Shown here: positions 5,876 through 28,049 of the stretch, one piece after another
Numbering within the stretch: the first letter of the stretch is position 1
Layout of the letters: each line of letters opens with the position of its first letter
Source of the DNA: Macrostomum lignano
Taxonomy: Eukaryota
Length of the DNA stretch: 28,049 nt
NCBI GenBank assembly: GCA_002269645.1
Contig: NIVC01002015.1
Span: 1 to 28,049, forward strand
Reading direction: 5' to 3'
Made by a program: the position numbers and the translations under genes
The notes under the pieces: generated by a model
Told to the model about the DNA's origin: nothing
The model's input: only the letters and a program-made list of their open reading frames with translations
Databases searched by the model: none

Positions 5876-5907
<32 letters not shown>

Positions 5908-6729: not shown

Positions 6730-8399
6730 CAGAAAGCTGCAAGTGGACGAGTTGCGCGAGTCTGTTTGAGGAGGTTATTTAAACCTTCAGAAACTGTCAA
6801 AAAAAGTTTGGTTGAGCAAACTAAGCTGAGACCATCCGGACGCGACAAGAAGAATGCATAATGCATGCGTCTGGGAGAGCTCTGCGTTGCTGGTGGGAGA
6901 CACCGAATAGCGATTGAGCTTTCAGGTAACTCTTTTTAGCTATTCTATCACACTATTTACAGAGCAAACCCGAGGAGCTTACAGCAGCTGGCCTCCTGCA
7001 GTTGGTGAAGTCTTCACTTGAGCAAGCCGCCTGAGCTTTCCCAGATTGCAGGGCTCGCAACTGCAAAGAGCCCGTGAGAATTTTATAGTCTCCCACAACC
7101 GGCTGAAATTCGACACACAAAAATTCGGCTGAATTCTTCCTTGGAATTCGATTTCCACTACGCGATTCAAAAATTCGATTTTAACTTTTTTTGACCACAC
7201 CCGAATTGCAGACTTCTGAAACGCATCAGGTTGCTCAGCTTCAAAGAGGGAAATTTATCGATGGTGGCTTTTCAAAGGCGGAGTAGCGGCCCATTGTCAT
7301 GAGGAAGGGATCAATCGTGGCTCAGCTCGATATTCAGAAGCCGGAACTCAAACTGTTTAACTTAATTTTGATTTTTTGACTTTCCGACTAAGTATAACCA
7401 GGCCATGATTCGAACGGTGTTTGGTCCTTGCGTGTTTTCTTCGAGGTGTCAGCTCATAAGAGTAAGATTTGCTGCCGAACTGCTGCAACACCTTAAAAAA
7501 TTCTGTCCTTTCCGCTGACTCCGGAGAACATACGAATACTGTACGCAGACAGGCACTCGCGCACACGCTCACCCAGGATGTACAGCGTCAGGCTTTCTAA
7601 TCATCTGGCATGTACACTCTGTGACTTGGGTTTGAGAGTCGGGCACGTTTACCGCTGAGCTTCTTGGCCCTGGGCTGAATGGCTTGCAGTTTTCTGAAAG
7701 CGGAGGACACAGCCGCACACGGCTAACCTGCGTTTTTGTGCCAAATTTCGTAGCTTACTTTTCCTTCGTCACGGATATCATTCCCTAACTCTGAATTCTC
7801 GTATTTGGCCTAACCGCAGACGCAGCATGATTCTGTCCCGGCCACAATTCGCCACCCCCGCGCTTTGACTTTGGCCTCCGCAACTTTGCTCAGTGTCGGG
7901 TGTCAATCGTCCACCGTATCTGCTTGTTTTTTAAGCGCACTGTTGATTTATCCTCTTGGGTAAACAGCAACTCAACAGTTGTAACCCATTCGTGCGATGT
8001 TCAAGTTCATACAAATTCCTGGTATGGCATTTTGCTTGCAGCACTGTCTACAGCACCGCAGAGTCATCTGACGAGAGTCAGCTGATCCCAGCAATGTCAA
8101 CTTTTATCCGAGCAGCTTGTGCGGCTCTAGCGCGGCTGACCTGCGCTCAAACCCTGGATTTTCGTAGAGGCCAGTGATTCGTTACATGTGCAAGCGTATC
8201 TGTTTTGACGGTAAAGAGTAACGGAGAACTTCAAAAGCACCGGGTCCAGGTTTTTGTCCCAGTTGAGTAGTCAAGGTCAGGTGGCCTCGCCTCCACCGAA
8301 AATTTTCGAATGAGTTGTAAATTGTAAAAAGTAAAAAATTGTAAAAAAGAAAAAAAAGAAAAAAATGTAAAAAAAAATTTTTGTAAAAAATTGTAAAGA

Positions 8400-9037
<638 letters not shown>

Positions 9038-9640
9038 GCACTAAGTTTGTGTACAGCGACCCAAAGTCGGCATAGATGACGGGTACCACATAGATGTCAT
9101 GAGAGCAAAATACGCTCATATTTACTATGAAATATGAAATGCAGAAGGTATATTTTTGTGCAGCGTTCAAGTCTCAATTTGAAAACAGATTCCGAAACTG
9201 GAGTTCATACTTGGGTCACATTGGGTGAAGGCCGCAGCTGAGATTCAGAATCGGAGCTCGGCAGAGCTGCTTGGCTTTCTGCAGCCTGCGCACCGAGCCT
9301 CCCACTCGCAGCGGTGAACAATGGGTCGAGAGTGATGTCGACTGCAGCTGTTTCAGAGCTACTTTTAGCTCTGATGAGGCCATCTTCGTTTGAGTTTACA
9401 ACTCAAACCGCCCACCCCGCCTTGCCCAGCTCTCCTCTCTTCCACCGCATTCTCAAACCGAGTCTCAAACAGCTTCGCACGGAGTGTACACCGGTTGAGC
9501 ACGGAAAAATGACAACTCTCTGTCTTTGAAAAGCGGCGCTAGCGTAAAGGTGCTGGCAAAATTGAGTTTGTCCGGCACAACAGCAGTTTCTTTCAGCGCC
9601 TCTGCGATTTTGATTCTCGCGCGCGGTCAGACAGTCAGCC

Positions 9641-12600
9641 ATGGGACACAGCCACAGTCGCGACGGCATGAAGAAGGTGCAGGGCGAGTTGAAACGTAAG
9701 TCACCGACCAGTATCCGCTGGTCCCTGAGCACGAATACGTTCGCAGCGGCACGCTCACACATGGTGTGGAGGGGTCGGCAAACTCCGACCCGCAGGCCAC
9801 GTGCGGCCCGCAAAGCCTCTCTATCTGGCCCTTGGGTTCTTTGAAAATTCACAATAGCAATCCGGCCCGCTCAAGGTCCATGTCTCTGCTCAGCTCTCTT
9901 TTCTCTCCTCTCCCTTCTCTCCTCTCATTCTCCCATTTCATATTTCCTCTCCTCTCGTCGTCTCACTTTCCTCTCGCCTCACCTGTCGTCCCCTCGCCTT
10001 TCCTTTCTCCTATCTCTCATCTCTCCTCTCTTCTCTATTCTCTCTCCTCTTTCCCCTCCTCTGGCCCGCAGTCATGCGCTGGGTTCTCTATAGTAAAAAA
10101 GTTTGCCAACCCTTAGAAGTTTGCCTATATCCAAATGTACATCTATAACTAGTGCATCACCGCCTGCTTTCCAGTCTCCGAAGCGGAGACAGGCGACATG
10201 ATGAAGCGCTTCTTCCAGTTGACCAACAACAGGGACAGCCTGTCGCGGCATCAGTTTCACGAGACTATCAAGCGCTCACTTCACGGCCAGCCATTGTAAG
10301 CTTGATGTTGGGTGTGGGGGGATGGTCTTACAGGAGATGGGATCAGCAATTATTAGCTTGAAAATGAATTCCCCATATGCCCTCCCATCAGCGACAAGAA
10401 ACTGTGGGACTCCGTGTTCGATATGCTGGACCTGAACAAGGACGGCAGTATCGACTTCTACGAGTTCTCCATCTCCATGGTGTACAGCTCGAAGCTGCCG
10501 ATGGAGAAGAAAATCGACTGTAAGTTCATTTCTGGACACTTGCGTCCCTGCAGTGTTGTCCTCAATGTGTCCCTGCAGTGTTGTCTTCAATGTGTCCCTG
10601 CAGTGTTGTCCTCAATGTGTCCCTGCAGTGTTGTCCTCAATGTGTCCCTGCAGTGTTGTCTTCAATGTGTCCCTGCAGTGTTGTCTTTAATGTGTCCCTG
10701 CAGTGTTGTCCTCAATGTGTCCCTGCAGTGTTGTCTTCAATGTGTCCCTGCAGTGTTGTCTTCAATGTGTCCCTGCAGTGTTGTCTTCAATGTGTCCCTG
10801 CAGTGTTGTCTTCAATGTGTCCCTGCAGTGTTGTCTTCAATGTGTCCCTGCAGTGTTGTCTTCAATGTGTCCCTGCAGTGTTGTCTTCAATGTGTCCCTG
10901 CAGTGTTGTCTTCAATGTGTCCCTGCAGTGTTGTCTTCAATGTGTCCCTGCAGTGTTGTCTTCAATGTGTCCCTGCAGTGTTGTCTTCAATGTGTCCCTG
11001 CAGTGTTGTCTTCAATGTGTCCCTGCAGTGTTGTCTTCAATGTGTCCCTGCAGTGTTGTCTTCAATGTGTCCCTGCAGTGTTGTCTTCAATGTGTCCCTG
11101 CAGTGTTGTCCTCAATGTGTCCCTGCAGTGTTGTCCTCAATGTGTCCCTGCAGTGTTGTCCTCAATGTGTCCCTGCAGTGTTGTCCTCAATGTGTCCCTG
11201 CAGTGTTGTCCTCAATGTGTCCCTGCAGTGTTGTCTTCAATGTGTCCCTGCAGTGTTGTCTTCAATGTGTCCCTGCAGTGTTGTTTTCAATGTGTCCCTG
11301 CAGTGTTGTTTTCAATGTGTCCCTGCAGTGTTGTCTTTAATGTGTCCCTGCAGTGTTGTTTTCAATGTGTCCCTGCAGTGTTGTCTTCAATGTGTCCCTG
11401 CAGTGTTGTCTTTAATGTGTCCCTGCAGTGTTGTCTTCAATGTGTCCCTGCAGTGTTGTCTTCAATGTGTCCCTGCAGTGTTGTCTTCAATGTGTCCCTG
11501 CAGTGTTGTCTTCAATGTGTCCCTGCAGTGTTGTCTTCAATTTGTCCCTGCAGTGTTGTCTTTAATGTGTCCCTGCAGTGTTGTCTTCAATGTGTCCCTG
11601 CAGTGTTGTCTTCAATGTGTCCCTGCAGTGTTGTCTTCAATGTGTCCCTGCAGTGTTGTCTTCAATGTGTCCCTGCAGTGTTGTTTTCAATGTGTCTTAA
11701 ATTGTGTCTCAACTGTGTCTCAACTGTGTCTCAACTGTGTCTCAACTGTGTCTCAACTGTGTCTCAACTGTGTCTCAACTGTGTCTCAACTGTGTCTCAA
11801 CTGTGTCTAAACTGTTCCTGCTGCACCCGCCGCAGACCTGTTCCAGATGATGGACTTCAATGGCGACGGCCAGGTGAGCGTCGAGGAAATGAACCGCGCC
11901 ATCCGAACTGCCAGCCGCATCGCCAACAATGCCGAGCGAGTCTGGGACCTGGAGGAGTATTTTCCCACTCTGGTGAGCAGCTTGAGTGAAGGCTGGGGAT
12001 GGTGAGGGCTGGGGATGGTGAGGGCTGGGGATGGTGAGGGCTGGGGATGGTGAGGGCTGGGGATGGTGAAGGCTAGGGTTTGCAAAGGCTGGGCATTGTG
12101 AAGGCTGGGGATTGTGAAGGCTAGAGATTGTGAAGGTTGGGGATTGTGAAGGTTGGGGATTGTGAAGGCTGGGGATGGTGAGGGCTGGGGATGGTGAAGG
12201 CTAGGGTTTGCAAAGGCTGGGCATTGTGAAGGTTGGGGATTGTGAAGGCTTGGGATTGTGAAGGCTAGAGATTGTGAAGGTTGGGGATTGTGAAGGCTGG
12301 GGATTGTGAAGGTTGGGGATTGTGAAGGCTGGGAGTTTTTGAAAGCTAGTAGAACAGGAGTTCAGGTGACCGTTAATTTTTACAGCTGTTCAGAATGAAT
12401 TGGGTTAGGAAAATGCAGCTTCAATACTACTTAAAGTAGTTCGCAGACAATTCCGATAGAATACGATCGTGATTGGTTCAGTAGGGAAGTCGGCGCAGGT
12501 TTTGTGGATTAGAAAACCCGATGATAAATGCACTCTCAACTGGAACGCTGGCCATCCCGCAGGCTTCCAGGGACACGCTGACAAAAAGAGAGTTCAAGGA

Positions 12601-12658
12601 CGCGATGTCCACCCGCAAGGGCCAGGAGCTGATGAACTGCCTGAACTTCCACATCTGA
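9641..12658 (+). CDS. N-myristoylated neuronal calcium sensor/recoverin/calcineurin-B-like EF-hand protein; 178 aa
   Basis: Exons 9641-9695, 10175-10295, 10392-10519, 11836-11972, 12563-12658 (phases 1,2,1,0; all GT-AG; 537 nt open). It starts MGHSHS (MGxxxS) and has canonical EF loops DLNKDGSIDFYE and DFNGDGQVSVEE. Confidence 0.9.
9893..10062 (+). repeat. CT-rich low-complexity tract in EF-hand gene intron 1
   Basis: Nearly pure pyrimidine run of CTCT/CTCC motifs. Confidence 0.8.
10544..11696 (+). repeat. 25-bp minisatellite (CCCTGCAGTGTTGTCTTCAATGTGT), ~46 copies, in EF-hand gene intron 3
   Basis: Directly visible with few variants; it generates three spurious Cys-rich ORFs. Confidence 0.99.
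11703..11815 (+). repeat. 11-bp tandem repeat (TGTGTCTCAAC), ~10 copies
   Basis: Abuts the 25-mer array and resembles part of its unit. Confidence 0.95.
11986..12333 (+). repeat. 16-17-bp G-rich minisatellite (GGCTGGGGATGGTGAG / GGCTGGGGATTGTGAA) in EF-hand gene intron 4
   Basis: Directly visible; starts 13 nt after the donor. Confidence 0.95.
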
Positions 12659-12804
12659 TGGGCAAGAGAACTCGGCGAGAGAAAAACCTCAGATGAGAAA
12701 AGACAGCGTACACATCTTCGTCTCACTTGCTTGTTTGAGCACACATTGAATTGCGGAATCTGCTTGTGTACAAATAACATCATGGCTAACAGCTCATCCG
12801 CTTT

Positions 12805-12890
12805 TACTCAGCCAAAATCATAATTGCATGTTTACTCAGCCAAAATCATAATTGTACTCAGCCAAAATATTATTTGTATGTTTACTCAGC
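12805..12890 (+). repeat. Short imperfect tandem duplication TACTCAGCCAAAAT(CATAATTG), 3 copies plus 1 partial
   Basis: Copies start at about 12805, 12833, 12855 and 12883. Confidence 0.85.
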
Positions 12891-12989
12891 GTGCCATATT
12901 TGATAGGAAAATCTCTAAACTTGTTTAAATTGACTAATTTAATTTTTTTTCTGTCAATATAGACTCCAGTTTTTTGGGTTCCATACCCG

Positions 12990-13700
12990 GAAATTTCCCG
13001 TCTGTATGCGAGGCCCAACCCAATGGCCCAAAGTGTACACCCTTGAATTAGTTGACTCAACTGCAGGGGGCTCCGTGCATCCGGATGTAGCGAGGAGGCG
13101 TTGCCGCCCATGACCCCTGGCGACCACGGGCAGCTGGTGTTGCGGTGTCGCGCAGGGAGATTCGGTGCTGCGGGTGTCTGCAGCGCGGTCCCCCTCCGGA
13201 GAGTCCAGGAGGTGGATTGTCGCTCGCCCGGTAGCCTTTAGGTAGCGGACGAGCTGGCAGAGATTCTCGGGCCTGAAAACGTCGGAGAGGTCCGGGTTTG
13301 GGCTGAGGTAGTTGAGCCTGTCCTGAGTAAAGGCGGGGCATTCACAGAAGGCGAGGCAGAATGGGCATTTCTCACTACGGATTTTTCCCTGAAGGTGACG
13401 ATGTCTGGCGAAACAGCCATGACCCGAGATGGCCATGGTCACCGCCCTGATGTCCCTGCGGTTGAGTCCAAGCAGGGCCTGCTGTACACCCTGTGGTACA
13501 CCTGCTGTACACGTCCGCACCTGCGCACCGACACCAGCGCGTGAACAGCGGCCTTTGGGTCTCAGCTCATGGATGCCCGCCTCATATGACCCCTAACCCA
13601 GTTAGTCAGGCCAAGCAAAGGGCCAGAGCGGTTTTCCTAGGCAAACTCTCCAAAGATTGCCCATCTGCGCCTGTCGGTGAGGACGGAAGGGCAGGCTGGC
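12990..13700 (-). mobile_element. 5'-truncated degenerate LINE (LOA/R1/I/Tad-like) with RNase H and C-terminal CCHC-type zinc finger
   Basis: The minus strand gives VLTD..., WVRGH (13600-13586; RNase H WVxGH motif), then [30 protein letters not shown]...KCPFC...CECPAF...[13 protein letters not shown], the typical LINE ORF2 C-terminus with the ETxEH segment deleted. Frameshifts and stops are present. Confidence 0.8.
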
Positions 13701-13991
13701 TTGGCGGGATCGACAGCGCGTTGAGTGGAACTTGTCAGGGATTTTTGTCACACACAGCACTTAAGATGGAGAGCGCGAGGCTGGGGAGCGACTATGAAAG
13801 GGAATTAGCGAGCGAGCACTGCCTCCCGGGGAGCGACCCGGCAACCTCAGATCTGAGGTCAGCGAGTGCAGCTGCAACCCGACAGAACACTTTTTGCCAC
13901 GGCTTCTCCATGGCCTGCGCTCGACCAAGTACAGATGGCCTTTGGGGCTGGGCAGGTTGGAGTGGGGCGCTAAGCTAGTAGTGAGCATATA

Positions 13992-15092
13992 AAGCTGAGA
14001 GTCAGGGAGCGCCAAGCTGAAAGTCAGGGGGCGCCAAGCTGAGAGTCAGGGGCACCGAGCTGAGAGTCAGGGAGCGCCAATCTGAGAGAGTCAGGGAGCG
14101 CCAAGCTGAGAGTCAGGGGCACCGAGCTGAGAGTCAGGGAGCGCCAATCTGAGAGTCAGGGGGAGAGCTCCAAGCTGAGAGTCAGGAGGAGAGCGCCAAT
14201 CTGAGAGTCAGAAGGAGGGCGCCAATCTGAGAGTCAGAAGGAGGGCGCCAATCTGAGAGTCAGAAGGAGGGCGCCAATCTGAGAGTCAGAAGGAGGGCGC
14301 CAATCTGAGAGTCAGGAGGAGGGCACCAAGCTGAGAGTCAGGAGGAGGGCGCCAATCTGAGAGTCAGGAGGAGAGCGCCAATCTTAGAGTCAGGAGGAGG
14401 GCGCCAAGCTGAGATTCAGGGGGAGGCCTCCAAGCTGAGAGTCAGGGGAGAGCTCCAAGCTGAGAGTCAGGGGGAGAGCTCCAAACTGAGAGTCAGGGGG
14501 AGGCCTCCAAGCTGAGAGTCAGGGGGCGCCAATCTGAGAGTCAGAGGGCGCCAATCTGAGAGTCAGGAGGAGGGCGCCAAGCTGAGAGTCAGAGGGCGCC
14601 AATCTGAGAGTCAGGAGGAGGGCGCCAAGCTGAGAGTCAGGGGAGGGCGCCAAGCTGAGAGTCAGGAGGAGAGTGCCAATCTGAGAGTCAGGAGGAGAGT
14701 GCCAATCTGAGAGTCAGAGGGCGCCAATCTGAGAGTCAGGGGGCGCCAATCTTAGAGTCAGGAGGAGTTTGCCAATCTGAGAGTCAGAAGGAGAGCGCCA
14801 ATCTGAGAGTCAAGAGGAGAGCGCCAATCTGAGGGTTAGGAGGAGAGCGCCAATCTGAGGGTTAGGAGGAGAGCGCCAATCTGAGGGTTAGGAGGAGAGC
14901 GCCAATCTGAGGGTCAGGAGGAGAGTGCCAATCTGAGAGTCAGAGGGCGCCAATCTGAGAGTCAGGGGGCGCCAATCTGAGGGTCAGAGGGCGCCAATCT
15001 GAGAGTCAGAGGGCGCCAATCTGAGGGTCAGGGGGCGCCAATCTGAGGGTCAGAGGGCGCCAATCTGAGAGTCAGGGGGTGCCAATCTGAGA
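13992..15092 (+). repeat. 22-26-bp minisatellite, core GCCAATCTGAGAGTCAG plus a purine-rich variable linker
   Basis: Directly visible; linkers are G/A-rich variants, not unique spacers. Confidence 0.97.
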
Positions 15093-15475
15093 TATTTCAT
15101 CCATAGAGCAAAAACCCATTATTCCATATCATAAGACAGTCAAGTTTATTGAGCAGGATGCAGGACTCTGATAAAGCAATTCATCAATCGCAAATCTCAG
15201 TTTCCAGTGCGCAAGCGCAGTTGCCGATCCAGGCACTCTTGCTGACTTCCCTTGCCACCCCAGCCCATCGGGAGGCTTTCTCTGAAACAGGAGGGATTGC
15301 AGTGAAATACGAAACCCAATTGCCAGGCCAAGCGTGACATTTCCCTTGTCTTGCTGTCGTGCATGGATGGCCAGCTGACATTCCGCTTGTGCAAGCGCTG
15401 GGGGACAGCGCGATCGTTAATGGGCCTTTGGTACGAAAGGGTGACAAGCTTAAATTAGTGCGCTAAACTTGAATC

Positions 15476-16462
15476 GAGGGCGTCAGGCTGGACTAGAGGG
15501 CGTCAGACTGGATTAGAGGGCGTCAGGCTGGACTAGAGGGCGTCAGACTGGATTAGAGGGCGTCAGACTGGATTAGAGGGCGTCAGACTGGATTAGAGGG
15601 CGTCAGACGGGATTATAGGGCGTCAGACCGGATTAGAGGGCGTCAGGCTGGATTAGAGGGCGTCAGACTGGATTAGAGGGCGTCAGACTGGATTAGAGGG
15701 CGTCAGGCTGGACTAGAGGGCGTCAGACTGGATTAGAGGGCGTCAGACTGGATTAGAGGGCGTCAGACTGGATTAGAGGGCGTCAGACGGGATTATAGGG
15801 CGTCAGACCGGATTAGAGGGCGTCAGGCTGGATTAGAGGGCGTCAGACTGGATTAGAGGGCGTCAGACTGGATTAGAGGGCGTCAGACGGGATTATAGGG
15901 CGTCAGACCGGATTAGAGGGCGTCAGGCTGGATTAGAGGGCGTCAGACTGGATTAGAGGGCGTCAGACGGGATTATAGGGCGTCAGACCGGATTAGAGGG
16001 CGTCAGGCTGGATTAGAGGGCGTCAGACTGAATTAGAGGGCGTCAGACTGGATTAGAGGGCGTCAGACGGGATTATAGGGCGTCAGACCGGATTAGAGGG
16101 CGTCAGGCTGGATTAGAGGGCGTCAGACTGGATTAGAGAGGAATAGAGGGCGTCAGACTGGAATAGAGAGGAATAGAGGGCGCTAGACTGGAATAGAGGG
16201 CGCCAGACTGGAATAGAGGGCGCTAGACAGGAATAGAGGGCGCCAGACTGGAATAGAGGGCGCTAGACAGGAATAGAGGGCGCCAGACTGGAATAGAGGG
16301 CGCTAGACAGGAATAGAGGGCGCCAGACTGGAATAGAGGGCGCTAGACAGGAATAGAGGGCGCCAGACTGGAATAGAGGGCGCCAGACTGGAATAGAGGG
16401 CGCCAGACTGGAATAGAGGGCGCCAGACTGGAATAGAGGGCGCCAGACTGGAATAGATGGCG
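15476..16462 (+). repeat. 20-bp minisatellite (GGGCGTCAGACTGGATTAGA grading to GGGCGCCAGACTGGAATAGA) with higher-order structure
   Basis: Directly visible; the subtype switch is at about 16140-16190. Confidence 0.98.
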
Positions 16463-16962
16463 CAAAGCACCCACAGGCGCCAAACTTGAATCAGTTGCGC
16501 CAGGGTTTCGCTAAAAGCGCCCAGCCCCCTCACCGAAAGCCCTCAGCAATCTTGAGCTGGGCCTGCTCCGCTATCTGCCAACAATCAGCGCCAAGCATTT
16601 TATCTCATCTATAAATAAACCAAACAGTTGCCAAAAATGCGATCAACTTGAATTCAAAAATAAAAATTCTGTAATTCTACGAGCCTATAATTGCTAGTTT
16701 AGATCTGCCAGATCGGCATGACAGCGATAAGCCATTGAAAGCAGCATTGCAGGTCTGCCGAAATTCTGTCTCCGCATGAGTTGAGCTGCTGCAGACTTCG
16801 GTCCTTATCTCTGAGACACTTGCTCAGGTCACCCTCGCTCTCTCTCAAGACTTGATAGCTCTCCTCACTCACTTTTGCCTCCAGATTTCATTGACCGAAG
16901 TCTTGAAAGGGTAGCGGCTCACGTGTCTTATGGCATTCACAGCTATTCTATTCACAGCTCAC

Positions 16963-17708
16963 CACTCACTCCAATCTCTCAGTCTCACTCACTCCAATCT
17001 CAGTCTCACTCACTCTAATATCTCAGTCTCACTCACTCCAATCTCTCAGTCTCACTCACTCCAATCTCTGTCTCACTCACTCCAATCTCTGTCTCACTCA
17101 CTCCAATCTCTGTCTCACTCACTCCAATCTCTGTCTCACTCACTCCAATCTCTCAGTCTCACTCACTCCAATCTCTGTCTCACTCACTCCAATCTCTCAG
17201 TCTCACTCACTCCAATCTCTCAGTCTCACTCACTCCAATCTCTCAGTCTCACTCACTCTAATCTCTCAGTCTCACTCACTCTAATCTCTCAGTCTCACTC
17301 ACTCTAATCTCTCAGTCTCACTCACTCCAATCTCTCAGTCTCACTCACTCCAATCTCTGTCTCACTCACTCCAATCTCTCAGTCTCACTCACTCCAATCT
17401 CTGTCTCACTCACTCCAATCTCTCAGTCTCACTCACTCCAATCTCTCAGTCTCACTCACTCCAATCTCTCAGTCTCACTCACTCCAATCTCTCAGTCTCA
17501 CTCACTCCAACCTCTCAGTCTCACTCACTCCAATCTCTGTCTCACTCACTCCAATCTCTGTCTCACTCACTCCAATCTCTGTCTCACTCACTCCAATCTC
17601 TCAGTCTCACTCACTCCAATTTCTCAGTCTCACTCACTCCAATCTCTCAGTCTCACTCAGTCCAATCTCTCAATCTCACTAACTCCAGTCTCTCAGTCTC
17701 ACTCAGTC
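16963..17708 (+). repeat. 21/23-bp minisatellite (CTCACTCACTCCAATCTCT[CA]GT)
   Basis: Directly visible. Confidence 0.97.
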
Positions 17709-18212
17709 CTGAGCTTCTCAATACCAAAGATGGGAGAGTTACGCTCCCCAGTTGCAGCTAATTCCGCAGTGATTCAAAGCTGACCTGCAACCCACCCAAA
17801 CTACGCTCGTACAGGCCAAAAATAGGTACAAAAAGGCTAACAACTGCTGGTCACAGCCTCCTCTGCGCTCCTTCAGTTGATCCAGAAATGCCAGCTACGG
17901 CACTGCAGTGCCTTGCGTGTCCCCCCTCACTCTGCATGCAATGCCTTCTTTGCAACCAAACTGTTCAAAGCGGTCGTCTGACTCTCTGCCCCTCCACCCC
18001 GCAAAAAAAACCTGAGGGCGGGAGGTGAGAGGGTTGGGGCTTTGAATTTAGTCAGGGACTTCTCTATACAAGTTCCTGGACTGGAATCTTCATGGAATAG
18101 ACATGGGTCCACACATCACTGTAAAATCAAGGGAGTTAAAACAGCTTCTTGAGTACTTCGCACCAAGACAGGACCGAATTTTTGAAGGCCTTCTTCAGTG
18201 ACATGATGAAAA

Positions 18213-18570
18213 ACTCTCCTTTCCTCTCCTCTCCTCTCTTCTCTTCTTCTCTCCCCTCTCTCCTCTCCTCTCCTATACTCTCCTCTCCTCTTCACATCTC
18301 CTCTCCTCTCCACCCTTAGTCTTCACATCGCCTCTCCTTTCTTCACATCTCTTCTTCTCTCCCCTCCCCTCCCCTCCCCTCCTCTCCTCTCCTCTCCTCT
18401 CCTCTCCTCTCCTCTCCTCTCCTCTCCTCTCCTCTCCTCTCCTCTCCACTCTTCTCTCCTCTTTTCTCTCCTTCTCTCATCTACTCTACTAGCTCCTCTC
18501 TTCACATCTCCTCTCCTCTCCTCTCCTTTCCATTCTTCACATCTCTTCTCTCTCCCCTCCTCTTCTAAAT
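18213..18570 (+). repeat. (CTCCT)n-type pyrimidine microsatellite/low complexity
   Basis: Directly visible; source of the spurious RGEE-repeat ORFs. Confidence 0.93.
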
Positions 18571-19270
18571 TCTCAAGATTCTTTTCAAAAAGTTAGCCGA
18601 CCTTTGCTCTAGCCCCAATAAGGTTAGATGCATGTAGGCAGGAGCTTCCAGTCCAGATGCTATACTTTGAGAAGTCCCTGTCTTTAGTCAGCTTTAAAGA
18701 GAGGGGGGCTGTGGCTGAACAGAGGCGCCGAGCGACCGCCCCCTTCCGCGGACAGCCCCCCCCCCCAACAGCCGCAGCCCCAGAGCCTTATCAGGCCGCG
18801 GCGCGGACACAGGCAGGTAAGGAGGCCGGCCTTCACCTCCCTCCGTTTATCGCCAGCCAGCCAGATGAATTTACGCACTTCGTAGCCCCAAATAGAATTC
18901 GCAAATTGGGACGCTCAGCTTTTGTTAACCTACAAGCCACCAAGTGCAGCCGACGCCACGCAGCGGGCTCGGGACCCGGTAAGGCCACTCCCCAGTGTAC
19001 AGTCCGTGTGCGCCGGTGCCCAACCTCCACCTCCACCGCCCGCCATTCATTGGCCTCTTAAAACACCAACAGAAGGCCGCAACAAACGCGTGTTCTGCCA
19101 ACAGCGCCACCCACCCCAACTCCAACAGCACAGTTCTTGCTTGCCCCCTCACTGCTTCGTTTTCCTGGACTGGGTCTGTCTTAAAAGCGTTCGTCCATCT
19201 TGCCCGTGTGCAGACCCAGAAAGGCAAACAAGAAGAAGACTGAGAAGAAACACGAAGCCAGGAAAAGGAA

Positions 19271-21513
19271 ATGACTGCTCAAAACCGACTGCTCACTCTG
19301 TCTCTGCTGTTGCTGGGCTGCCTAGCAACCAGCCGGGCGACTCTGGTCGTCACTGGCACCAACTACACTGTGAAGCTGGTGGAGGGCCGTGAGGGCGAGC
19401 CAAAGTACGTGCTGAGCAGGCAGTACCTGGATGTGCTGGAGTGCAGCATGTACGCCTCCGACAGCTCAAAGCTGGTTGACCCGAAAATCGACTGGAAAAT
19501 CGAAGGCTCCAACGACACTCTGGACTCGCGCTTCAGCTTCAGCGGCCGGCTGTCCGAGGATAAAAAGAATTTCACCTCCACCCTCAGCGTGCGGCGGCCA
19601 GAGAACAAGCACGTCACCAACTACACCTGCACAGGTGGGACTGACTTCCGCTCACTTTACTGGAATCTGGAGTATGTGTTGCCAGCTGGGGTTGTGCTGC
19701 CAGCTGGGGTTGTGCTGCCAGCTGGGGTGTGTGTTGCCAGCTGGGGTTGTGCTGCCAGCTGGGGTTGTGCTGCCAGCTGGGGTGTGTGTTGCCAGCTGGG
19801 GTGTGTGTTGCCAGCTGGGGTGTGTGTTGCCAGCTGGGGTGTGTGTTGCCAGCTGGGGTGTGTGTTGCCAGCTGGGGTGTGTGTTGCCAGCTGGGGTGTG
19901 TGTTGTCAGCTGGGGTGTGTGTTGCCAGCTGGGGTATGTGTTGCCAGCTGAGGTATGTGTTGCCAGCTGGGGTGTGTGTTGCCAGCTGGGGTGTGTGTTG
20001 TCAGCTGGGGTATGTGTTGCCAGCTGAGGTATGTGTTGCCAGCTGGGGTGTGTGTTGTCAGCTGGGGTGTGTGTTGTCAGCTGGGGTGTGTGTTGTCAGC
20101 TGGGGTATGTGTTGCCAGCTGAGGTATGTGTTGCCAGCTGGGGTGTGTGTTGCCAGCTGGGGTGTGTGTTGTCAGCTGGGGTGTGTGTTGTCAGCTGGGG
20201 TTGTGTTGCCAGCTGGGGTTGTGCTGCCAGCTGGGGTTGTGCTGCCAGCTGGGGTGTGTGTTGCTAGCCGGGGTATGTGTTGCCAGCTGTTGTATATGTA
20301 AAAAAGCCGCAGGCTCATCAGTCCGCATGGCTCCGCCGCTTTCAGGCAGCGCGACGGACCAGCCGGAGGCGCAGGGCCGGGCCCGCCTGCAGTCCATGCC
20401 GCTCATCAGCTTCAAGATCGACGGCGTGACCATGTCGGATGTGGGCGCCTGGCCCGGCCAGGACATCCAGATGAGCTGCATAGTGGAGGGCAACCCCGCG
20501 GGCAGCCCGGAGTGGAAGCGGGAGAAGGACGGAGCCACCATCGGGAACGGCACGGCGAACCTGGTGCTGGAGGCCGTCAACTACGATGAGCACCGGGGCT
20601 TCTACACCTGCAGGTGACTGGCGCTTTGCCAGATAATTAATTATGATTAGCTAGCTTCATTTCGTACATGTTTGTACTTTGAGTATCGGGTGCATTTCCG
20701 GAACTTTATACAGTACAATGTCATTGTCAAAGAGTTCCAAATTATAGTGTCAGGAGGTCCAAAAATTAGAAGAAACTTTCAAACATGGGGTGTCAGGAGC
20801 TCAATAAGTAGGGTGTCAGGAGCTCAATAAGTAGGGTGTCAGGGGCTCATTAGTTAGGGTGTCAGGAGTTCATTAGTAAGGGTGTCAGGAGCTCATTAGT
20901 TAAGGTGTCAGGAGTTCATTAGTAAGGGTGTCAGGAGCTCATTAGTTAAGGTGTCAGGAGTTCAATAAGAGGGTGTTCGGAGCTCATTAGTTAGGGTGTC
21001 AGGAGTTCATTAGAAAGGGTATCAGGAGTTCAATAAGAGGGTGTCAGGAGCTTATTAAGAGGGTGTCAGGACCTCATTAGTTAGGGTGTCAGGAGTTCAT
21101 TAAGTAGGGTGTCAGCAGCTCATTAAGTAGGGTGTCAGCAGCTTTTTAAGTAGGGTGTCAGCAGCTCCTTAAGTAGGGTGTCAGCAGCTCATTAAGAGGG
21201 TGTCAGCAGCTCATTAAGAGGGTGTCAGCTCATTGAGAGGGTGTCAGGAGCTCAAACTGTGTCACGAGGGTCTCAAACGCCAGGTACCAGCAGCTCAGCC
21301 CGCCCGAACCCTTGCAGCGCGAACAACAGCCAGGGCACGAACGCCGCCAAGATCTTCCTCCGGGTGAAGCACCCGCAGGCATACCTGACCCCTATGATCA
21401 TCATCATTGTGGAGGTGATCATCATCGCCATAATCGTGGTTGTGTACGAGTACTTCATGTACAAAAAGCACAAGCAGGCTGAGGCGGAGGGCGAGGCGTA
21501 CAAGACGGACTGA
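19271..21513 (+). CDS. BSG: Basigin/neuroplastin-family two-Ig-domain type I membrane protein; 275 aa
   Basis: Exons 19271-19634, 20346-20613, 21318-21513 (phases 1,2; 828 nt open). It has a signal peptide and two Ig domains (C..W..YTC). The TM segment LTPMIIIIVEVIIIAIIVVVYE carries the intramembrane Glu and YE ending diagnostic of basigin/neuroplastin/embigin. Confidence 0.88.
19672..20289 (+). repeat. 17-19-bp minisatellite (GCCAGCTGGGGTGTGTGTT) in basigin intron 1
   Basis: Directly visible; source of the CCQLG/VLPAG artefact ORFs. Confidence 0.97.
20787..21254 (+). repeat. ~21-24-bp minisatellite (GGGTGTCAGGAGCTCATTAGTTA) in basigin intron 2
   Basis: Directly visible, more diverged than the other arrays. 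Confidence 0.93.
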
Positions 21514-22046
21514 TAGTCTGGTTTGCTGCACTTGAAGGCTTTAATTGGTTCTAAACACCAGCGGCCTTGCAGTGCCTGTATTTGCCACCATGCGGATTGC
21601 CGGTAGGGGGATTTCCGAGTTGGGGAGACTGAGCCCCATCTGAACTCAGAGAAGACCAGTTTGTGACACCTGCTCAGCGAATGCGTTGTTGCTGATGCTA
21701 ATTTTAGACTCACCATTTCCTGTCATCACAAATTTGTTTATAACCCAGCGGTAAGTGACAGCACAGAGCTTCATCAAATGCTGTATTTTCTACCCTGAAA
21801 CCCCCCAGTTGCCTTAATCCGTCATTTTCTTCCCCTCTTCTCTCTCTGAAATATAGCTCTTATCAAGCAGTTTGTTCTGCAGCACCTGTGTATCAAAGCT
21901 CCCCAGCTCGGCACTTGATCGCCCCATACAAATTTCATTGTCTGCTCGCTTAGAACTAGCATAACACATTATATAGTAAAGTGTTACTGTGAGAATTGAA
22001 AATTACCTAATTAATGTGCTGTTAACTTGAAACAACGAACGAAGAA

Positions 22047-22112
22047 AATAAATTTTGCTTTCGTAATTTTTTTCTAAACGAGTTTTCTAAACATTTCCAA
22101 GCTGATTTTATT
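22047..22112. terminator. Convergent candidate polyadenylation signals: AATAAA 22047-22052 (+, basigin) and AATAAA 22112-22107 (-, HDHD2)
   Basis: Canonical hexamers downstream of each stop codon, in an AT-rich stretch; their use is inferred. Confidence 0.45.
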
Positions 22113-22276
22113 TATAAGACTGCGACTGCTACTGACAGTAGCACGTTGGGTGTTGCTGAGCATTTTTTTCATCTGTTTAATTTAGTTGTCAATCTTTATC
22201 TCAGTAACAACTTATACGGTTGAGTAAATGCAATGTCGGACAAGTCTAATTTTGACATTTTGAGTTTGTCAGGCAT

Positions 22277-22572
22277 GGGTCACACTCGGCCAGACGCGGG
22301 TCAGACTCGGTTAGACGCGGATCAGAGTCGGTCAGACGCGGGTCAGAGCCGGTCAGACGCGGGTCAGAGCCGGTCAGACGCGGGTCAGAGCCGGTCAGAC
22401 GCAGGTCACACTCGGTCAGACGCAGGTCACACTCGGTCAGACGCGGGTCAGAGTCGGCCAGACGCGGGTCAGAGCTGGTCAGACGCGGGTCAGAGTCGGC
22501 CAGACGCGGGTCAGACGCGGGTCAGAGTCGGTCAGACGCGGGTCAGAGGCGGGTCAGACGCGGGTCAGAGTC
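22277..22572 (+). repeat. 21-bp minisatellite (GCGGGTCAGAGTCGGTCAGAC) in the HDHD2 3'UTR, starting at the stop codon
   Basis: Directly visible; source of the SRSDAG artefact ORF. Confidence 0.95.
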
Positions 22573-24914
22573 AACGCCTGTCGCGCAGGATGAGGCGCAC
22601 AGCATCCAGCGCAGTGTCGCAGACAGCGGTGGGCGGCGCCTCGCAGTCTGCCCGGGCCTCGTCGCCGGCGCGGTACTTGCCGGTGCGCACCAGAATGGCG
22701 CGCAGGCCGGAGCGCACGGCGCCCGCAGCGTCGTCCTCTGCATCGTCGCCGATCATCACAGCGCAGGCGGGCGCGGCAGCGTCAGCGCCGAGAACTGACT
22801 GCGGAGGCGGGGTGGCCGCGATGTTGAGGTGACGTTGGAGATCTCTGCCGCTCAAGAGAGTCACCCAAATCTACCCGTGTATCCCCTCTGCCCTTTCGAT
22901 TCCACCCTCCAGTGTCTCTCTCTACCCTCCAGTGTCTCTCTACCCTCCAGTGTCTCTAACCCTCCAGTGTCTCTCTCTACCCTCCAGTGTCTCTCTACCC
23001 TCCAGTGTCTCTCTACCCTCCAGTGTCTCTACCCTCCAGTGTCTCTCTACCCTCCAGTGTCTCTAACCCTCCAGTGTCTCTCTACCCTCCAGTGTCTCTA
23101 ACCCTCCAGTGTCTCTCTCTACCCTCCAGTGTCTCTCTACCCTCCTGTCTCTCTCTACCCTCCAGTGTCTCTCTACCCTCCAGTGTCTCTCTACCCTCCT
23201 GTCTCTCTCTACCCTCCTGTCTCTCTCTACCCTCCAGTGTCTCTCTACCCTCCTGTCTCTCTCTACCCTCCTGTCTCTCTCTACCCTCCAGTGTCTCTCT
23301 ACCCTCCTGTCTCTCTCTACCCTCCTGTCTCTCTCTACCCTCCTGTCTCTCTCTACCCTCCTGTCTCTCTCTACCCTCCTGTCTCTCTCTACCCTCCAGT
23401 GTCTCTCTACCCTCCAGTGTCTCTCTACCCTCCTGTCTCTCTCTACCCTCCTGTCTCTCTCTACCCTCCAGTGTCTCTCTACCCTCCTGTCTCTCTCTAC
23501 CCTCCTGTCTCTCTCTACCCTCCTGTCTCTCTCTACCCTCCTGTCTCTCTCTACCCTCCAGTGTCTCTCTACCCTCCTGTCTCTCTCTACCCTCCAGTGT
23601 CTCTCTACCCTCCTGTCTCTCTCTACCCTCCTGTCTCTCTCTACCCTCCAGTGTCTATCTACCATCCTGTCTCTCTCTACCCTTCAGTGTCGCATTCTAC
23701 AATCAGTGTCTCTCTACCCTCCAGTGTCTTCTACTCACCCACGCTCACCTCAAAGAACGCAGGTGTAGGCTTGCCGAAGGCCTGTGCCGAGCGGCCGCAG
23801 GCGAACTCCAGCGCGGTGACGAACGGCCCGGGGCCCAGCCGCAGCAGGCCGTCCCCGCTGCGCAGGTAGCGGCCCCGGTGCGCGGCCAGCAGAGGCGCCT
23901 CCGGTCTGTCCAGCAGCAGCCGCATGGCCCGGCTGAGATCCTGGTAGTTGAGCTTATCGGGAGCCAGGCCCACAACCACCGAGTCGAAGTCCGCACCGCC
24001 GGGCTCGACTTGGAAATCGGCGGCCGCGGATTCTGACAGCAGCAGGAGAGGCCGGCGGAGGCCCAGTCGGTTCGCGGCGTCGGCTGTGACTGACAGGCTG
24101 GTGTGCAGCCGGCCGGGCTCCGGCTCGATACCCAGGCTGGCCAGGCGGGAAAGCAGGTCCGACCTGGGGGAGCGCCACAGCACTACTGTGTGAGTAGTCT
24201 GTTGGGGGCTTCTTCATGGCTAACAGAAAAAGTAGCTTAGCAGATTAGGGAGTGAGGGTGCAGTAGGGAGTGAGGGTGCAGTAGGGAGTGGGGGTGCAGT
24301 AGGGAGTGAGGGTGCAGTAGTAGTGAGGGTGCGGTAGGAGTGAGGGTGCGGTAGGAGTGAGGGTGCGGTAGGGAGTGAGGGTGCAGTAGGAGTGAGGGTG
24401 CAGTAGGAGTGAGGGTGCAGTAGGAGTGAGGGTGCAGTAGGAGTGAGGGTGCAGTAGGAGTGAGGGTGCAGTAGTAGTGAGGGTGCGGTAGGAGTGAGGG
24501 TGCGGTAGGAGTGAGGGTGCGGTAGGGAGTGAGGGTGCAGTAGGAGTGAGGGTGCAGTAGGGAGTGGGGGTGCAGTAGGGAGTGAGGGTGCAGTAGGGAG
24601 TGGGGGTGCGGTAGGGAATGAGGGTTCAATAGCTAAGCTGTGAAACTGTGATGCAAATTGCATCAGCCGCAGTTGAGAGAAGAGCTGCAGGTGAGGTGTG
24701 AATTGGGTCAATTAGCTGTATGATCTGAGAAAATCACCACAAAATGATCCAACCACACTGACCTTCCTTCCTTGCTAGTGTTGGACACAAAGTCCACAGC
24801 AAGACCAGCTGCTTTAGCCTCAGCCAGAGCCTCAAGAGCTCCTGGTAGCAGCTGGTTTTCAATGTGCAAGGTGCCACTAAGGTCAAATAGAATGCGTCGT
24901 ACCCCAGCAAACAT
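22571..24914 (-). CDS. HDHD2: Haloacid dehalogenase-like hydrolase domain-containing protein 2; 264 aa
   Basis: Exons 24914-24763, 24163-23749, 22798-22571 (phases 2,0; 795 nt open). Motifs [40 protein letters not shown]...DD and LVRTGKYR match HDHD2 (HAD class IIA). Confidence 0.95.
22904..23729 (+). repeat. 18-bp minisatellite with two interspersed variants (ACCCTCCAGTGTCTCTCT / ACCCTCCTGTCTCTCTCT) in HDHD2 intron 2
   Basis: Directly visible; the 18-bp period explains the in-frame artefact ORFs (LYPPVS, RVERDR). Confidence 0.97.
24246..24625 (+). repeat. 17-18-bp minisatellite (TAGGGAGTGAGGGTGC[A/G]G) in HDHD2 intron 1
   Basis: Directly visible; units differ largely at a CpG/CpA site. Confidence 0.95.
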
Positions 24915-27479
24915 CTTGATATGTTTAGCAGAAAAAGTTAAATATATTTAAAAGTATACAACTTTGAAGAAATCAAAATGAAAGCCCATAAGTTTTTTAG
25001 ACCTACAATGATATGAAGATAATAACAAGATATCCCAACTTGAGGATGCAACTTTGCCTTTATAAGCTTTATTTAATCTTAAGCAAGAGGCAGTGTTGGG
25101 TCAAAGTAAATTCCAATTAGGTAACTTTTGGTTCCAAGGAAAGTAACCTCTTGTACTTGTTCCAGTATCAATACTTTTTAAAAAAATAACTTCTGGTCCT
25201 TTCTAATTTAAAGAACTGCCAATGAAAATGCACCCAAAAACTTCCTTATGGAAAAAAACAAAAACATAAGTTTGTCTAGAGTTAAATATTAGTCTTTTAG
25301 TTATTCCTAAAAAAATCTATTATTCCACAAGGATGCTATAATATTATTGCATCCAGAATTTAAGTGAATTTACAAGAACTTAGAAAACAAGGATAAGCAA
25401 TATATAGGTCACTACACTTGTGACTCCTAAAAAATTTGGAGCCCAAATTTCAAATGTTGATTCAGACTCTTGAGAAGTATATATAGAGAAAATTTTTGGC
25501 TAATAGGCATGTCACAATAAATAGAATATATTCAGATTTAGTTACATAGATTTTAGCAAAATTTTTGTTTATGCAGGTTACTCTTCTTTACTAGTACTAT
25601 GCTGTAGTCTTACAGCAGCATATGCTAAAGTAGTATTGTATACTGCTAAGTTATTTAGAATCAAAGATAATCTTTTGACAGCCTTGGAAATATCATCTAA
25701 CAATATAGAAAAAGGATACCATGACAACTTACAATTGCAATTAGACAGATGGACAAATGAATTTATGTATAAGACATTAAACCAAGTCTTATACATAAGA
25801 CATAATACTTTTATGATTAGTGCACTTTTGTGCTGCAATAGAAAAATATAATTAGCCTCAAACAAGTTAATACTTATAAAACACTCTCAGAATGCATATA
25901 CTCATCTTGCACCAATATTGAGATGAAGAAATTAGCCACCAAAAAGATTTCTATAAATCACAAGTGTAGTGTCCTAATGTATTACTAATGGTCCTTATTA
26001 GAAAACTTGCAAGAAATTGTTTAATGTTTAATTCTTTCAAATATGTCTTGTTTCTACATTAATTGGGCTGAACTGAAAAAATTATAAGCAAAAGAAACAA
26101 CTAAGGCATAAAAAGAGAATTCTTGTTAATCATTATAGAAAATTTAATTATATGCTATTTTTAGGCTGCAAAGTTAAGTTTACAGTACATCAAGGGTTTC
26201 TATGTTTTTTGTGCCTGCCATCTTAGTGCCCTAGTTTGTTGATTTAAGTAGTTACTAAAAATTCTTTTATTCATGATTCTATGGGATAGTAGGGCTACCG
26301 GCTACCATTGTTGGGTTTTGCATTGGAACTTTTTCCCTGGTTTGGCCTTTTCTGTCCACCTTGAGGTGCCTTAGTGACAAGGATTTTGTCATCTCCTATT
26401 TAGGGTTTGGTCCCATTGTTAGCTTTCTTTTTGCCCTTTTGTGGTTTTGGGTTTTTACCTTTTCTGGCCCCTATATATTGCCCCCCTATTTTGGTCTTTT
26501 GTTTTTCTTTGTGCTGCATGCTTTCTGCAGCTATTATTTTTGTATTTGCTGAACCACCTGTGGCCCTATAGCATGTCCCAATTTCTGCATCATGGCAATG
26601 ATTATTATTTATACATAATCATATTTAATCTTGTAAAAAAATTTATAACCCTGTCCTTCCTTCTGACTTACTTGTTTCTAATTTACTTTTTTTGACTCTT
26701 TGATGCTTGGATTGTTTATTTTAACTTCAGTTTAATAGTGAGTTTATAATCTTTATTTATCAAACTTAAACTACCAACTAACTAGCTAACTTATTACTGC
26801 ATCTCTACTGGGAAACTTTGTAGTGGCTTATCTAAACCTAATATAATAAATACCAAAGAAACCAATATTATTTAAGCATAGTTACTATTTGATCTATAGG
26901 CCCCTACACCTAGTCTATCTTGAGTACTTTGTCTATGGGACAAAATAACCAATTAATGTCAATTCTAAAAAAGCTCTGAGAAATTAACATTTTGTATATA
27001 AATTACAATGGTGACAGCACTACTCTTAGACTTAGTAAGCATCAATAACAAATTTTGACATACATTAAGTTTATAGTGTCTAAGGGCCCTACATTAAAAA
27101 TATAATGAGAATTAAATAATTGTTTAAACTATTAACAACAATATGCCTCATATATAGTACTAAGACTAAGACCTAGGCCTAAATTAAAAGAATGTTTAAA
27201 ATGTTAGAATAATATTATCATTATCATGATTCATAAATACTTATAAAGGATATTTTCAACAATAGTTATCCTAGGCCATCCTATGCCCTGAGCCTGAGGC
27301 AGTGAGGCAGAGTTTATTGTTTCAAAGCATTCTGACAAAAGCCAAAGGTAATCATTATTGGGTCAATCAAAATGAAGGCATAATCCTAGTTTCCCACATT
27401 AAATTATTTTGCGTTAAAAATCAACTGAATAAGTTAAAACAAGTTAGTCCATAGCAGTGAATAGTCCGCTGAGCTCACT

Positions 27480-27680
27480 AAATGGTATAATAATGAGCAA
27501 CCTAGAACAAGTTGCCGAATGACTTCTCTAAGTAAAGGCGGCGCCAGAAGTACTTGTTCAGGTGCAAATCAAAATAGGCCGTCGCTAGTGCCATTCATCT
27601 TCTGGAACTTTGCCTTGACATGCACCAAAGTCCCTTCAATGGTATTCATATGCAAAGTTCCTAGTTTGTAGTTTCTAGTT
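27480..27680 (-). mobile_element. Degenerate Merlin (IS1595-like) DNA transposase C-terminal fragment
   Basis: The minus strand gives HMNTIEGTLVHVKAKFQKMNGTSDGLF (His 27652-27650), a +1 frameshift, then DLHLNKYFWRRLYLEKSFGNLF*. This matches the recalled Merlin consensus HTNxIEGxWxxxKxxxxxxxGTSxxLFxxYLxEFxWRR. No TIRs identified. Confidence 0.7.
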
Positions 27681-28049
27681 TCATAATTCTAAAGTAGAAT
27701 TATGAAATAATATAACGAAGTAAACTAGAACTATGTCAAAAAGGGAAAAGCCTAGTATCTCAAAATATTCTCCAAGGCCAAAGCTGCCTTGAATAAAATC
27801 TTCACTTGTTGTTAACAATAGTCTTGACCATTTAAGAGCCTGAGCGTGGTTACGATACGATACGATCGTTCCTTCTTACAGATCAAAATTAATTTATTTA
27901 ACTAGTAGTGGCGGGGTCAAGTAGTTGTGTACAGTTACGGTTTAAGTTTAACATTTAAATAGTTTTTTAAACTGACTCTATTAGAAATAACGTAGCTTAT
28001 TTAAACAACTTTTTCAACTTTCAAACAAGTTTAAACAAATTTATTCAAT

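Follow-up and report, generated by a model that had tools for sequence, protein, structure and literature searches.

Why would a block of unique DNA lose nearly all of its CpG dinucleotides next to sequence that keeps them, and what process could do this in a flatworm? This question is raised by the 28,049-bp contig NIVC01002015.1 of the Macrostomum lignano assembly Mlig_3_7 (GCA_002269645.1), which was analysed in its entirety and is called the window here. Near its right end, a 2742-bp segment (the desert, 24670-27411, 32% GC) covers the upstream region, the first exon and the start of the first intron of the HDHD2 gene, and contains three CpGs where base composition predicts 70.0, an observed/expected ratio (o/e) of 0.043. 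An earlier sequence-only reading (the original prediction) had explained this block by localized methylation-driven mutagenesis, or by mutagenesis resembling repeat-induced point mutation (RIP), spreading from decayed transposons into a housekeeping gene. In this study, we analysed the CpG content of this one locus and of its duplicate at the start of contig NIVC01001541.1 (locus L001). Our results indicate that CpGs were lost in place, and the desert may be the footprint of a small methylated domain, a reading that we hold with evenly balanced confidence.

M. lignano is reported, in PMC11292947, PMC9246332 and PMC10658182, which cite Wasik et al. 2015, to retain DNMT1 and DNMT3 together with low-level 5-methylcytosine (5mC) of undescribed pattern. 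These reviews set it apart from planarians and parasitic flatworms, which, unlike M. lignano, do not keep the two enzymes, and PMC9246332 counts it among the few flatworms that have both, stating that the genomic DNA methylation pattern is unknown for every free-living flatworm. The premise of generally low methylation in flatworms has to be qualified for M. lignano, in which DNMT1 and DNMT3 are reported as retained alongside low-level 5mC (PMC11292947, PMC9246332). Our literature searches returned no description of the M. lignano methylation pattern or of CpG-free domains.

Results

CpG content of the desert and of the surrounding locus

The depletion is confined to CpG, as GpC, which serves as the control for CpG-only loss, is not depleted in the desert (o/e 1.39). 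The three remaining CpGs lie at 24895, 24898 and 26299, exactly as originally counted, against an expectation that was put at about 60 for about 30% GC and comes to 70.0 at the measured 32%. The non-coding part (24915-27411) holds a single CpG where 57.6 are expected (o/e ~0.02). With 70 expected, the Poisson probability of three or fewer CpGs is 2e-26, and the desert is poorer in CpG even than a vertebrate-like o/e of 0.2 would give (P = 1e-4).

Elsewhere in the contig, non-repeat 500-bp windows have CpG o/e of ~0.6-1.2. An AT-rich control at 4400-5500 (40% GC) has an o/e of 1.0, and the unique, AT-richer intergenic stretches 4400-5480, 21514-22276 and L001 5400-6766 range from 0.6 to 1.0. 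Since AT-rich DNA of the same locus keeps its CpGs, as had been claimed and as is seen both at 4400-5500 (o/e 1.0) and at 27412-28049 (o/e 0.85), low GC content is not the cause of the depletion; chance and low GC are both ruled out by the Poisson tests and these CpG-normal controls. The remaining long CpG-free gaps in the contig are all minisatellite or microsatellite arrays whose unit contains no CG. The desert is unique sequence, which rules out a tandem-repeat artefact.

A second copy of the desert

The NCBI entry for the HDHD2 protein is annotated on two contigs of GCA_002269645.1, NIVC01002015.1 and NIVC01001541.1. The latter is 272 kb long and independently assembled, and its start, L001, is collinear with our contig at 97.6% identity over 8.4 kb (L001 6191-14560), with all three HDHD2 exons identical between the copies. 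By this alignment, NIVC01002015.1 duplicates the beginning of NIVC01001541.1, either as a haplotig or as a homeolog. The second copy holds the same desert with the same edges (L001 6767-9325); the lone intergenic CpG (L001 7924) and the two exon-1 CpGs (L001 9326 and 9329) are common to both, and L001 has one additional CpG, located within a 6-bp insertion. Because the same edges recur in a second contig, the desert is neither a misjoin nor a contaminant, and, as read from the aligned copies, the depletion is shown to be older than their split. A misjoin or contaminant near 24.7 kb had been named as what would undo the original prediction, and the contiguity check did not bear it out, as the 272-kb contig shows both desert junctions. 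Searches of plasmid and phage collections gave no match to the locus.

Beyond the end of the window, L001 continues with ~1.4 kb of AT-rich DNA (31-37% GC) with CpG o/e of 0.5-1.2, followed by the 3' end of an upstream gene of 424 residues and by ~50%-GC DNA with o/e of 0.6-0.95. As the spacer beyond the desert is CpG-normal, the desert is a bounded 2.7-kb block rather than the whole AT-rich spacer.

Silent sites of HDHD2 exon 1

HDHD2 consists of three exons on the minus strand, and the 264 residues that they encode after splicing match M. lignano HDHD2 at 100% identity; the annotated protein of 264/266 aa spans exon 1 and exons 2-3. Exon 1 is genuine coding sequence of the host, as it carries HAD motif I and does not differ between the copies. 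Within the 226 bp from 24669 to 24894 (48% GC), which comprise the start of intron 1 and most of exon 1, there is no CpG against 12.9 expected. The desert thus runs through exon 1, as had been proposed. Exons 2 and 3 are only 600 bp and 2 kb away from exon 1, yet they are CpG-replete (Table 1).

The 50 codon junctions of exon 1 were informative about silent sites. A codon ending in C never precedes a G (0 of 22 junctions), whereas such codons stand before A, C or T at 10 of 28 junctions (Fisher p=0.0013), and codons ending in T are found at 11 of 22 junctions before G and at 7 of 28 before other bases (p=0.08). Exons 2-3 do not have this avoidance (C at the third position in 46 of 96 codons before G versus 56 of 116 otherwise). 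The Ala codons of exon 1 are GCT or GCA only. Furthermore, two of the three CpGs left in the desert form the first two bases of the Arg codons CGA CGC; transitions at these bases would produce a stop codon, Gln, Cys or His.

The junction bias and the retention of the Arg codons together form the pattern expected of CpG-to-TpG mutation filtered by selection. Read in this way, the codons show that CpGs in exon 1 survive only where their loss would change the protein, and that CpG depletion acted in place on resident host DNA, as a regional process shaping the silent sites of the exon. The original observations on this exon, namely CpGs within CGA CGC, Ala codons restricted to GCT and GCA, and 42% GC at third codon positions (GC3) as compared to 80% in exon 3, were all reproduced, and the proposal that CpG loss extends into a housekeeping-gene exon and is held back where it would be damaging is supported by the junction test (p=0.0013) and by the Arg codons.

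Two side observations concern the same gene. The protein encoded by exons 2-3 is enriched in Ala, Arg, Gly and Pro relative to orthologs of ~50% identity, which suggests strong GC-biased evolution of the HDHD2 gene body beside the AT-rich desert. And, a polypyrimidine tract with AG stands directly before the HDHD2 ATG (tttttctgctaaacatatcaag followed by ATG; 24915-24935, minus strand). The tract is compatible with a spliced-leader trans-splice acceptor, and the desert would then partly be transcribed outron.

Edges of the desert

At the left edge, CpGs return at a distance of 43 bp from where the 17-bp minisatellite of intron 1 ends. The minisatellite itself is partly CpG-depleted, and exon 2 past it is CpG-rich. 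The CpG/CpA variation among its units, which had been taken as a sign of the same process, is real, but it falls into two runs of three adjacent units; as it is confined to neighbouring units, it reflects few independent events.

At the right edge, the first CpG (27412) lies 3 bp past the desert-side arm of an inverted repeat around a transposase remnant, and a CG in the outer arm (27716) corresponds to CA in the desert-side arm. The Merlin remnant that had been noticed beside the desert is real: after frameshift correction it matches proteins with the ISXO2/IS1595 transposase domain PF12762 and represents the last ~60 residues of such transposases, although scanning 27300-28049, i.e. the remnant flank and the last ~110 bp of the desert, against Pfam in its three minus-strand frames gave no match, remnant included. 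The apparent ACG>ATG change in it (HTN>HMN) does not help the case, as it falls beyond the desert and cannot be polarised. It is plausible that the 33-nt arms are the terminal repeats of an internally deleted Merlin/IS1595-type transposon. This candidate element has 8 CpGs against 12 expected and a weak 8-bp target-site duplication (AAAATGAA / AAAAAGGG).

Both edges of the desert may therefore adjoin sequence younger than the block. However, exon 2 is ancient yet undepleted, so that the regime truly changes at the left limit.

Transposon content of the desert

No transposase similarity was found in the desert by tblastn with full-length Merlin/IS1595 transposases, and no repeats of it turned up when blastn was run on every other available M. 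lignano sequence. An inverted repeat at 25405-25976, which largely overlaps the sub-block 25501-26100 discussed below, is possibly an insertion resembling a miniature inverted-repeat transposable element (MITE) inside the desert. Since the Merlin remnant lies outside the desert and has kept its CpGs, the original idea of spreading from decayed transposons is unsupported: these searches found no transposon homology in the desert, and the sole recognisable transposon is external and CpG-bearing.

Tests for RIP

RIP is indicated by (CpA+TpG)/(ApC+GpT) of 1.03 or less, and by TpA/ApT of 0.89 or more together with TpA excess. The first index is 1.31 in the desert and 1.28 window-wide, i.e. above the threshold in both. 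With an o/e of 0.93, TpA shows no excess, and the TpA/ApT ratio comes to 1.05 in the desert versus 1.31 in the unaffected AT-rich flank, so this index does not discriminate here. TpA, originally described as plentiful, was thus present at an o/e of 0.93 and a TpA/ApT of 1.05, without any excess. Given these indices and the comparison of the copies, classical RIP was rejected, and the RIP-like alternative of the original prediction fares no better, with an index of 1.31, no TpA excess, and neither C>T bias nor CpG-linked differences between the copies.

Divergence between the copies

The two copies differ in the non-coding desert by 36 substitutions (23 transitions and 13 transversions; 1.44%), none of which involves CpG. 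None of the seven CpG sites of the desert differs between the copies, but these are too few for a test. In the 638-bp right flank, CpG sites differ six times more often than other sites (3/36 versus 8/578; p=0.022), which hints that CpG hypermutability extends into this younger sequence; on the GC-rich side, the corresponding values (3/333 versus 10/2078) are not significantly different. Divergence outside CpG is ~1.35% in AT-rich DNA, 2-3 times that of the GC-rich part (~0.5%, including ~800 bp of identical coding sequence). Polarising the substitutions by means of the second copy was tried and given up, because the copies are too close (36 differences) and differ nowhere at CpG. Hence the homeologous alignment suggested as a check yielded no CpG-directed differences in the desert, and nothing to suggest C>T mutation triggered by the presence of a copy.

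TpG or CpA sites account for 294 of the 1738 A/T positions in the desert, and ~11 AT>GC transitions separate the copies. We estimate that ~2 new CpGs would be expected between them; none arose from the 36 substitutions, which is not significant alone. CpG re-creation would amount to about one per lineage per 0.7% divergence. Because just one shared non-coding CpG is standing, we infer that CpG removal is still active or stopped very recently.

Table 1. Features of the desert and of the adjoining HDHD2 gene, with positions in the window.
Feature	Position	Strand	Description
CpG desert	24670-27411	none	unique AT-rich DNA, ~30-32% GC, 3 CpGs; made up of the ~2.5 kb preceding HDHD2, of exon 1, and of 95 bp at the start of intron 1
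HDHD2 exon 1	24763-24914	-	coding sequence, ATG 24914-24912, HAD motif I DLSGT; GC 51%, 2 CpGs vs 9.6 expected, GC3 42%
HDHD2 exon 2	23749-24163	-	GC 71%, 47 CpGs vs 52 expected, GC3 84%; outside the desert
HDHD2 exon 3 with stop codon	22571-22798	-	GC 72%, 37 CpGs vs 30 expected, GC3 80%
Arg6-Arg7 codons CGA CGC	24894-24899	-	both CpGs left in exon 1; also in L001
Sole non-coding CpG of the desert	26299-26300	none	common to the second copy (L001 7924)
17-bp minisatellite, intron 1	24249-24625	none	~22 units, CG/CA varies among units; transition zone at left desert edge
Right flank	27412-28049	none	AT-rich, 34% GC, 16 CpGs vs 18.8 expected (o/e 0.85)
Merlin/IS1595-type DDE transposase C-terminus	27481-27658	-	~60 residues, HMNTIEG...FWRR...HYY, one stop and one frameshift; just outside the desert
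Candidate deletion-derivative transposon	27377-27737	none	361 bp; 33-nt inverted arms 27377-27409 / 27705-27737, 25/33 matching
Possible MITE-like element	25405-25976	none	29-nt inverted arms separated by 514 bp and 83% complementary, with TA on either side; no CpG

Other features of the contig

The region 8399-24625 contains at least 17 long minisatellite arrays in introns and spacers, with units of 11-26 bp and lengths of up to 1.15 kb (e.g. 10544-11696), as well as a 637-bp (AGAC)n array. Several of the arrays have strong GC or AT skew, and the lengths of the minisatellite arrays differ between the two copies of the locus. A multi-exon EF-hand gene (9641-12658, plus strand; annotated product of 178 aa) carries minisatellites of 1.1 kb and 0.35 kb in its introns, and its reconstruction gave more than 1200 equally valid splice models; the MGxxxS start of the protein suggests N-myristoylation, as in neuronal calcium sensors.

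A two-exon rhodopsin-family G-protein-coupled receptor (Pfam 7tm_1) with a poly-Gln loop is located at 5482-6774 on the minus strand. It appears to be unannotated, as the search of the protein collection with it retrieved no M. lignano entry. A fibrinogen C-terminal domain exon (PF00147, E=5e-37) is found at 3739-4389 on the plus strand. On the minus strand, 221-1108 and 2020-2504 contain tandemly repeated open reading frames (ORFs) with the common motifs 'RTGVAPD.M.ELHRIG' and 'VVTT.DG.KYL.E.GE' and no Pfam match, which may be a lineage-specific tandem gene family. The 212-residue ORF at 12957-13592 (minus strand) has as its sole database relatives two metagenome proteins, one of them with an RNase H domain (PF00075), and is probably a retroelement fragment; no M. 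lignano entry was retrieved in a protein search with it. No Rfam or tRNA match was found anywhere in the 28,049-bp window.

Discussion

How could such a block arise? We consider the chances about even that the desert is the footprint of a small, sharply delimited and long-standing germline CpG-methylated domain. In this scenario, DNMT3 and DNMT1 of M. lignano would lay down 5mC in a domain covering the probable original intergenic and promoter region of HDHD2, exon 1 and the beginning of intron 1. Deamination of 5mC to thymine would convert CpG to TpG or CpA far faster than CpG is re-created, until almost none is left, and selection would spare those CpGs whose loss changes the protein, i.e. 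those of the Arg codons CGA CGC.

Several points weigh against this scenario. It comes from a single locus, without genome-wide sampling. The o/e of ~0.02 is below that of heavily methylated vertebrate DNA and, taken at face value, means CpG loss at ~50 times the ordinary transition rate, although the Poisson upper limit on one CpG lowers the required loss, by our estimate, to ~11 times that of transitions. An 11-fold rate is comparable to that of mammals. Promoter and first exon are depleted and the gene body is CpG-rich, which is the reverse of the usual gene-body pattern of invertebrates, and the Merlin/IS1595 remnant, an expected methylation target, retains its CpGs (o/e ~0.7-0.85). The TpG/CpA surplus that deamination should leave is not evident, the strand-symmetrised CA/TG rho* being 1.11 in the desert as compared to 0.98-1.24 elsewhere in the locus. 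In addition, CC/GG rho* is 1.36 in the desert versus 0.70-1.07 elsewhere, for which CpG loss alone gives no explanation. This last value is not uniform: three of the four desert sub-blocks have CC/GG of 1.4-1.7, whereas the sub-block 25501-26100 has a locus-typical 0.72, with CA/TG raised to 1.30. That the sub-blocks are compositionally heterogeneous yet all CpG-free speaks for a process acting across the region rather than for one foreign source.

Alternatively, CpG could be decaying genome-wide, with GC-biased gene conversion and sequence turnover making up for the decay in gene bodies rich in GC and minisatellites, so that the desert would be an old low-recombination pocket among younger, CpG-bearing neighbours. 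The GC3 of 80-84% and the Ala/Arg/Gly/Pro-rich protein of exons 2-3 suggest GC-biased evolution, both edges adjoin a potentially younger minisatellite or transposon, and CpG sites are hypermutable in the right flank. We nevertheless regard general decay as unlikely: the other AT-richer unique intergenic stretches keep a CpG o/e of 0.6-1.0, the transposase remnant is heavily decayed yet CpG-bearing, and a CpG-specific mutator, i.e. methylation, would still be needed. A shorter history is offered by a one-off or episodic CpG-targeted hypermutation, whether RIP-like or a deaminase burst, before the copies diverged. Near-total erasure (o/e 0.02) beyond that of usual steady-state methylation, sharp edges and a depletion older than the copy split would all follow from a burst, but the RIP indices do not fit it (1.31; TpA o/e 0.93), no TpG/CpA surplus remains, and the desert differences between the copies are neither C>T-biased nor CpG-linked (23 transitions, 13 transversions, 0 at CpG). 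It must also have been very recent, as CpGs would otherwise have re-accumulated. We know of no such episodic process in animals, and judge a burst to be quite improbable.

The same low probability is given to the view that the non-coding block has a different origin and was already CpG-poor, whether it was inserted long ago, belongs to a transposon family or was acquired horizontally, with exon 1 having become CpG-poor separately. A signature distinct beyond CpG (CC/GG 1.36 versus 0.70-1.07), a right edge at a transposon terminus or breakpoint and a left edge adjoining a minisatellite would agree with such an origin. Against this, the depletion continues unbroken through a conserved host exon into the intron, with a significant silent-site signature; terminal repeats, coding remnants, repeats in other available M. 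lignano DNA and matches in the plasmid and phage collections were all lacking; and sub-blocks of differing signature are all CpG-free. If instead selection purged CpGs from a regulatory region, for instance because this shields the HDHD2 promoter from methylation silencing, a block spanning the first exon of a housekeeping gene and the sequence near its promoter would make sense in a species that has DNMTs (as PMC9246332 reports). But selection would have to act on ~60 near-neutral sites over 2.5 kb, in a desert that evolves fast (1.4% between the copies, above GC-rich non-coding DNA), while the other promoters of the locus are CpG-normal, so this seems very improbable. An assembly artefact, i.e. 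a chimeric join or contaminant DNA, is suggested only by the short 28-kb contig that ends 3 kb past the gene, and is scarcely credible when the 272-kb contig, with 97.6% identity, shows both junctions again, exons 1 to 3 are all covered by the annotated protein of 264/266 aa, and there is no plasmid or phage match.

If the methylated-domain reading is correct, the low global 5mC of M. lignano may be concentrated in small, intensely methylated domains at a non-canonical place, and these could be found by a simple sequence scan. The block also shows how a local mutational regime alters the choice of codons in a single exon of a conserved gene, with the next exon lying no more than 600 bp away. 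A bolder version, which we advance as speculative and distinctly unlikely, is that M. lignano has focal, exceptionally intense methylation, or another CpG-directed mutator, aimed at unique promoter-proximal domains rather than at gene bodies or transposons, and producing 'anti-CpG-islands' with CpG near zero. If the pattern proves common and coincides with 5mC, it would be a useful, unsurprising methylation footprint; without such a coincidence, some new process directed at CpG would have to be invoked. Should anti-CpG-islands recur genome-wide, an undescribed DNMT targeting system of a regenerating flatworm could be mapped from sequence, and such blocks might even be the first RIP-like, CpG-specific genome defence in an animal.

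Among known systems, methylation-driven CpG suppression, as in vertebrates and in the low-CpG fraction of mosaic invertebrate genomes, resembles the desert in that only CpG is lost, GpC is intact, protected CpGs survive, T tends to stand in place of C at silent sites preceding G, and the host is reported to have DNMT1 and DNMT3. Typical CpG o/e values are ~0.2 in vertebrates and 0.3-0.6 in methylated genes of invertebrates. In contrast, the M. lignano desert is more complete (o/e 0.02-0.04), limited to 2.7 kb of a CpG-replete locus, and without a clear TpG/CpA surplus, and it covers promoter and first exon next to a CpG-rich gene body, the inverse of both a CpG island and invertebrate gene-body methylation. 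RIP of fungi (Neurospora, Leptosphaeria, and the CpG-context RIP-like process of some basidiomycetes) likewise produces sharp AT-rich blocks depleted in a C-containing dinucleotide, beside GC-rich genes and with leakage into the neighbouring gene. However, the target of RIP is CpA and that of the desert CpG, the index of 1.31 is outside the RIP range, and there is no TpA excess. Moreover, the desert is unique sequence whose two copies show no mutual C>T mutation. As two defining features of RIP, an index in the RIP range and C>T differences between copies, were tested and are absent, the desert is not a product of RIP. Its AT-richness is not due to CpG loss, which accounts for ~2% of GC, and RID-type enzymes are fungal. 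Transposon-targeted methylation of animals such as sponge, centipede and vertebrates shares with the desert a non-genic intergenic domain with transposon remnants nearby, but here the remnant lies outside the block with CpG o/e of ~0.7, and neither transposon coding sequence nor repeat homology was detected in the block itself.

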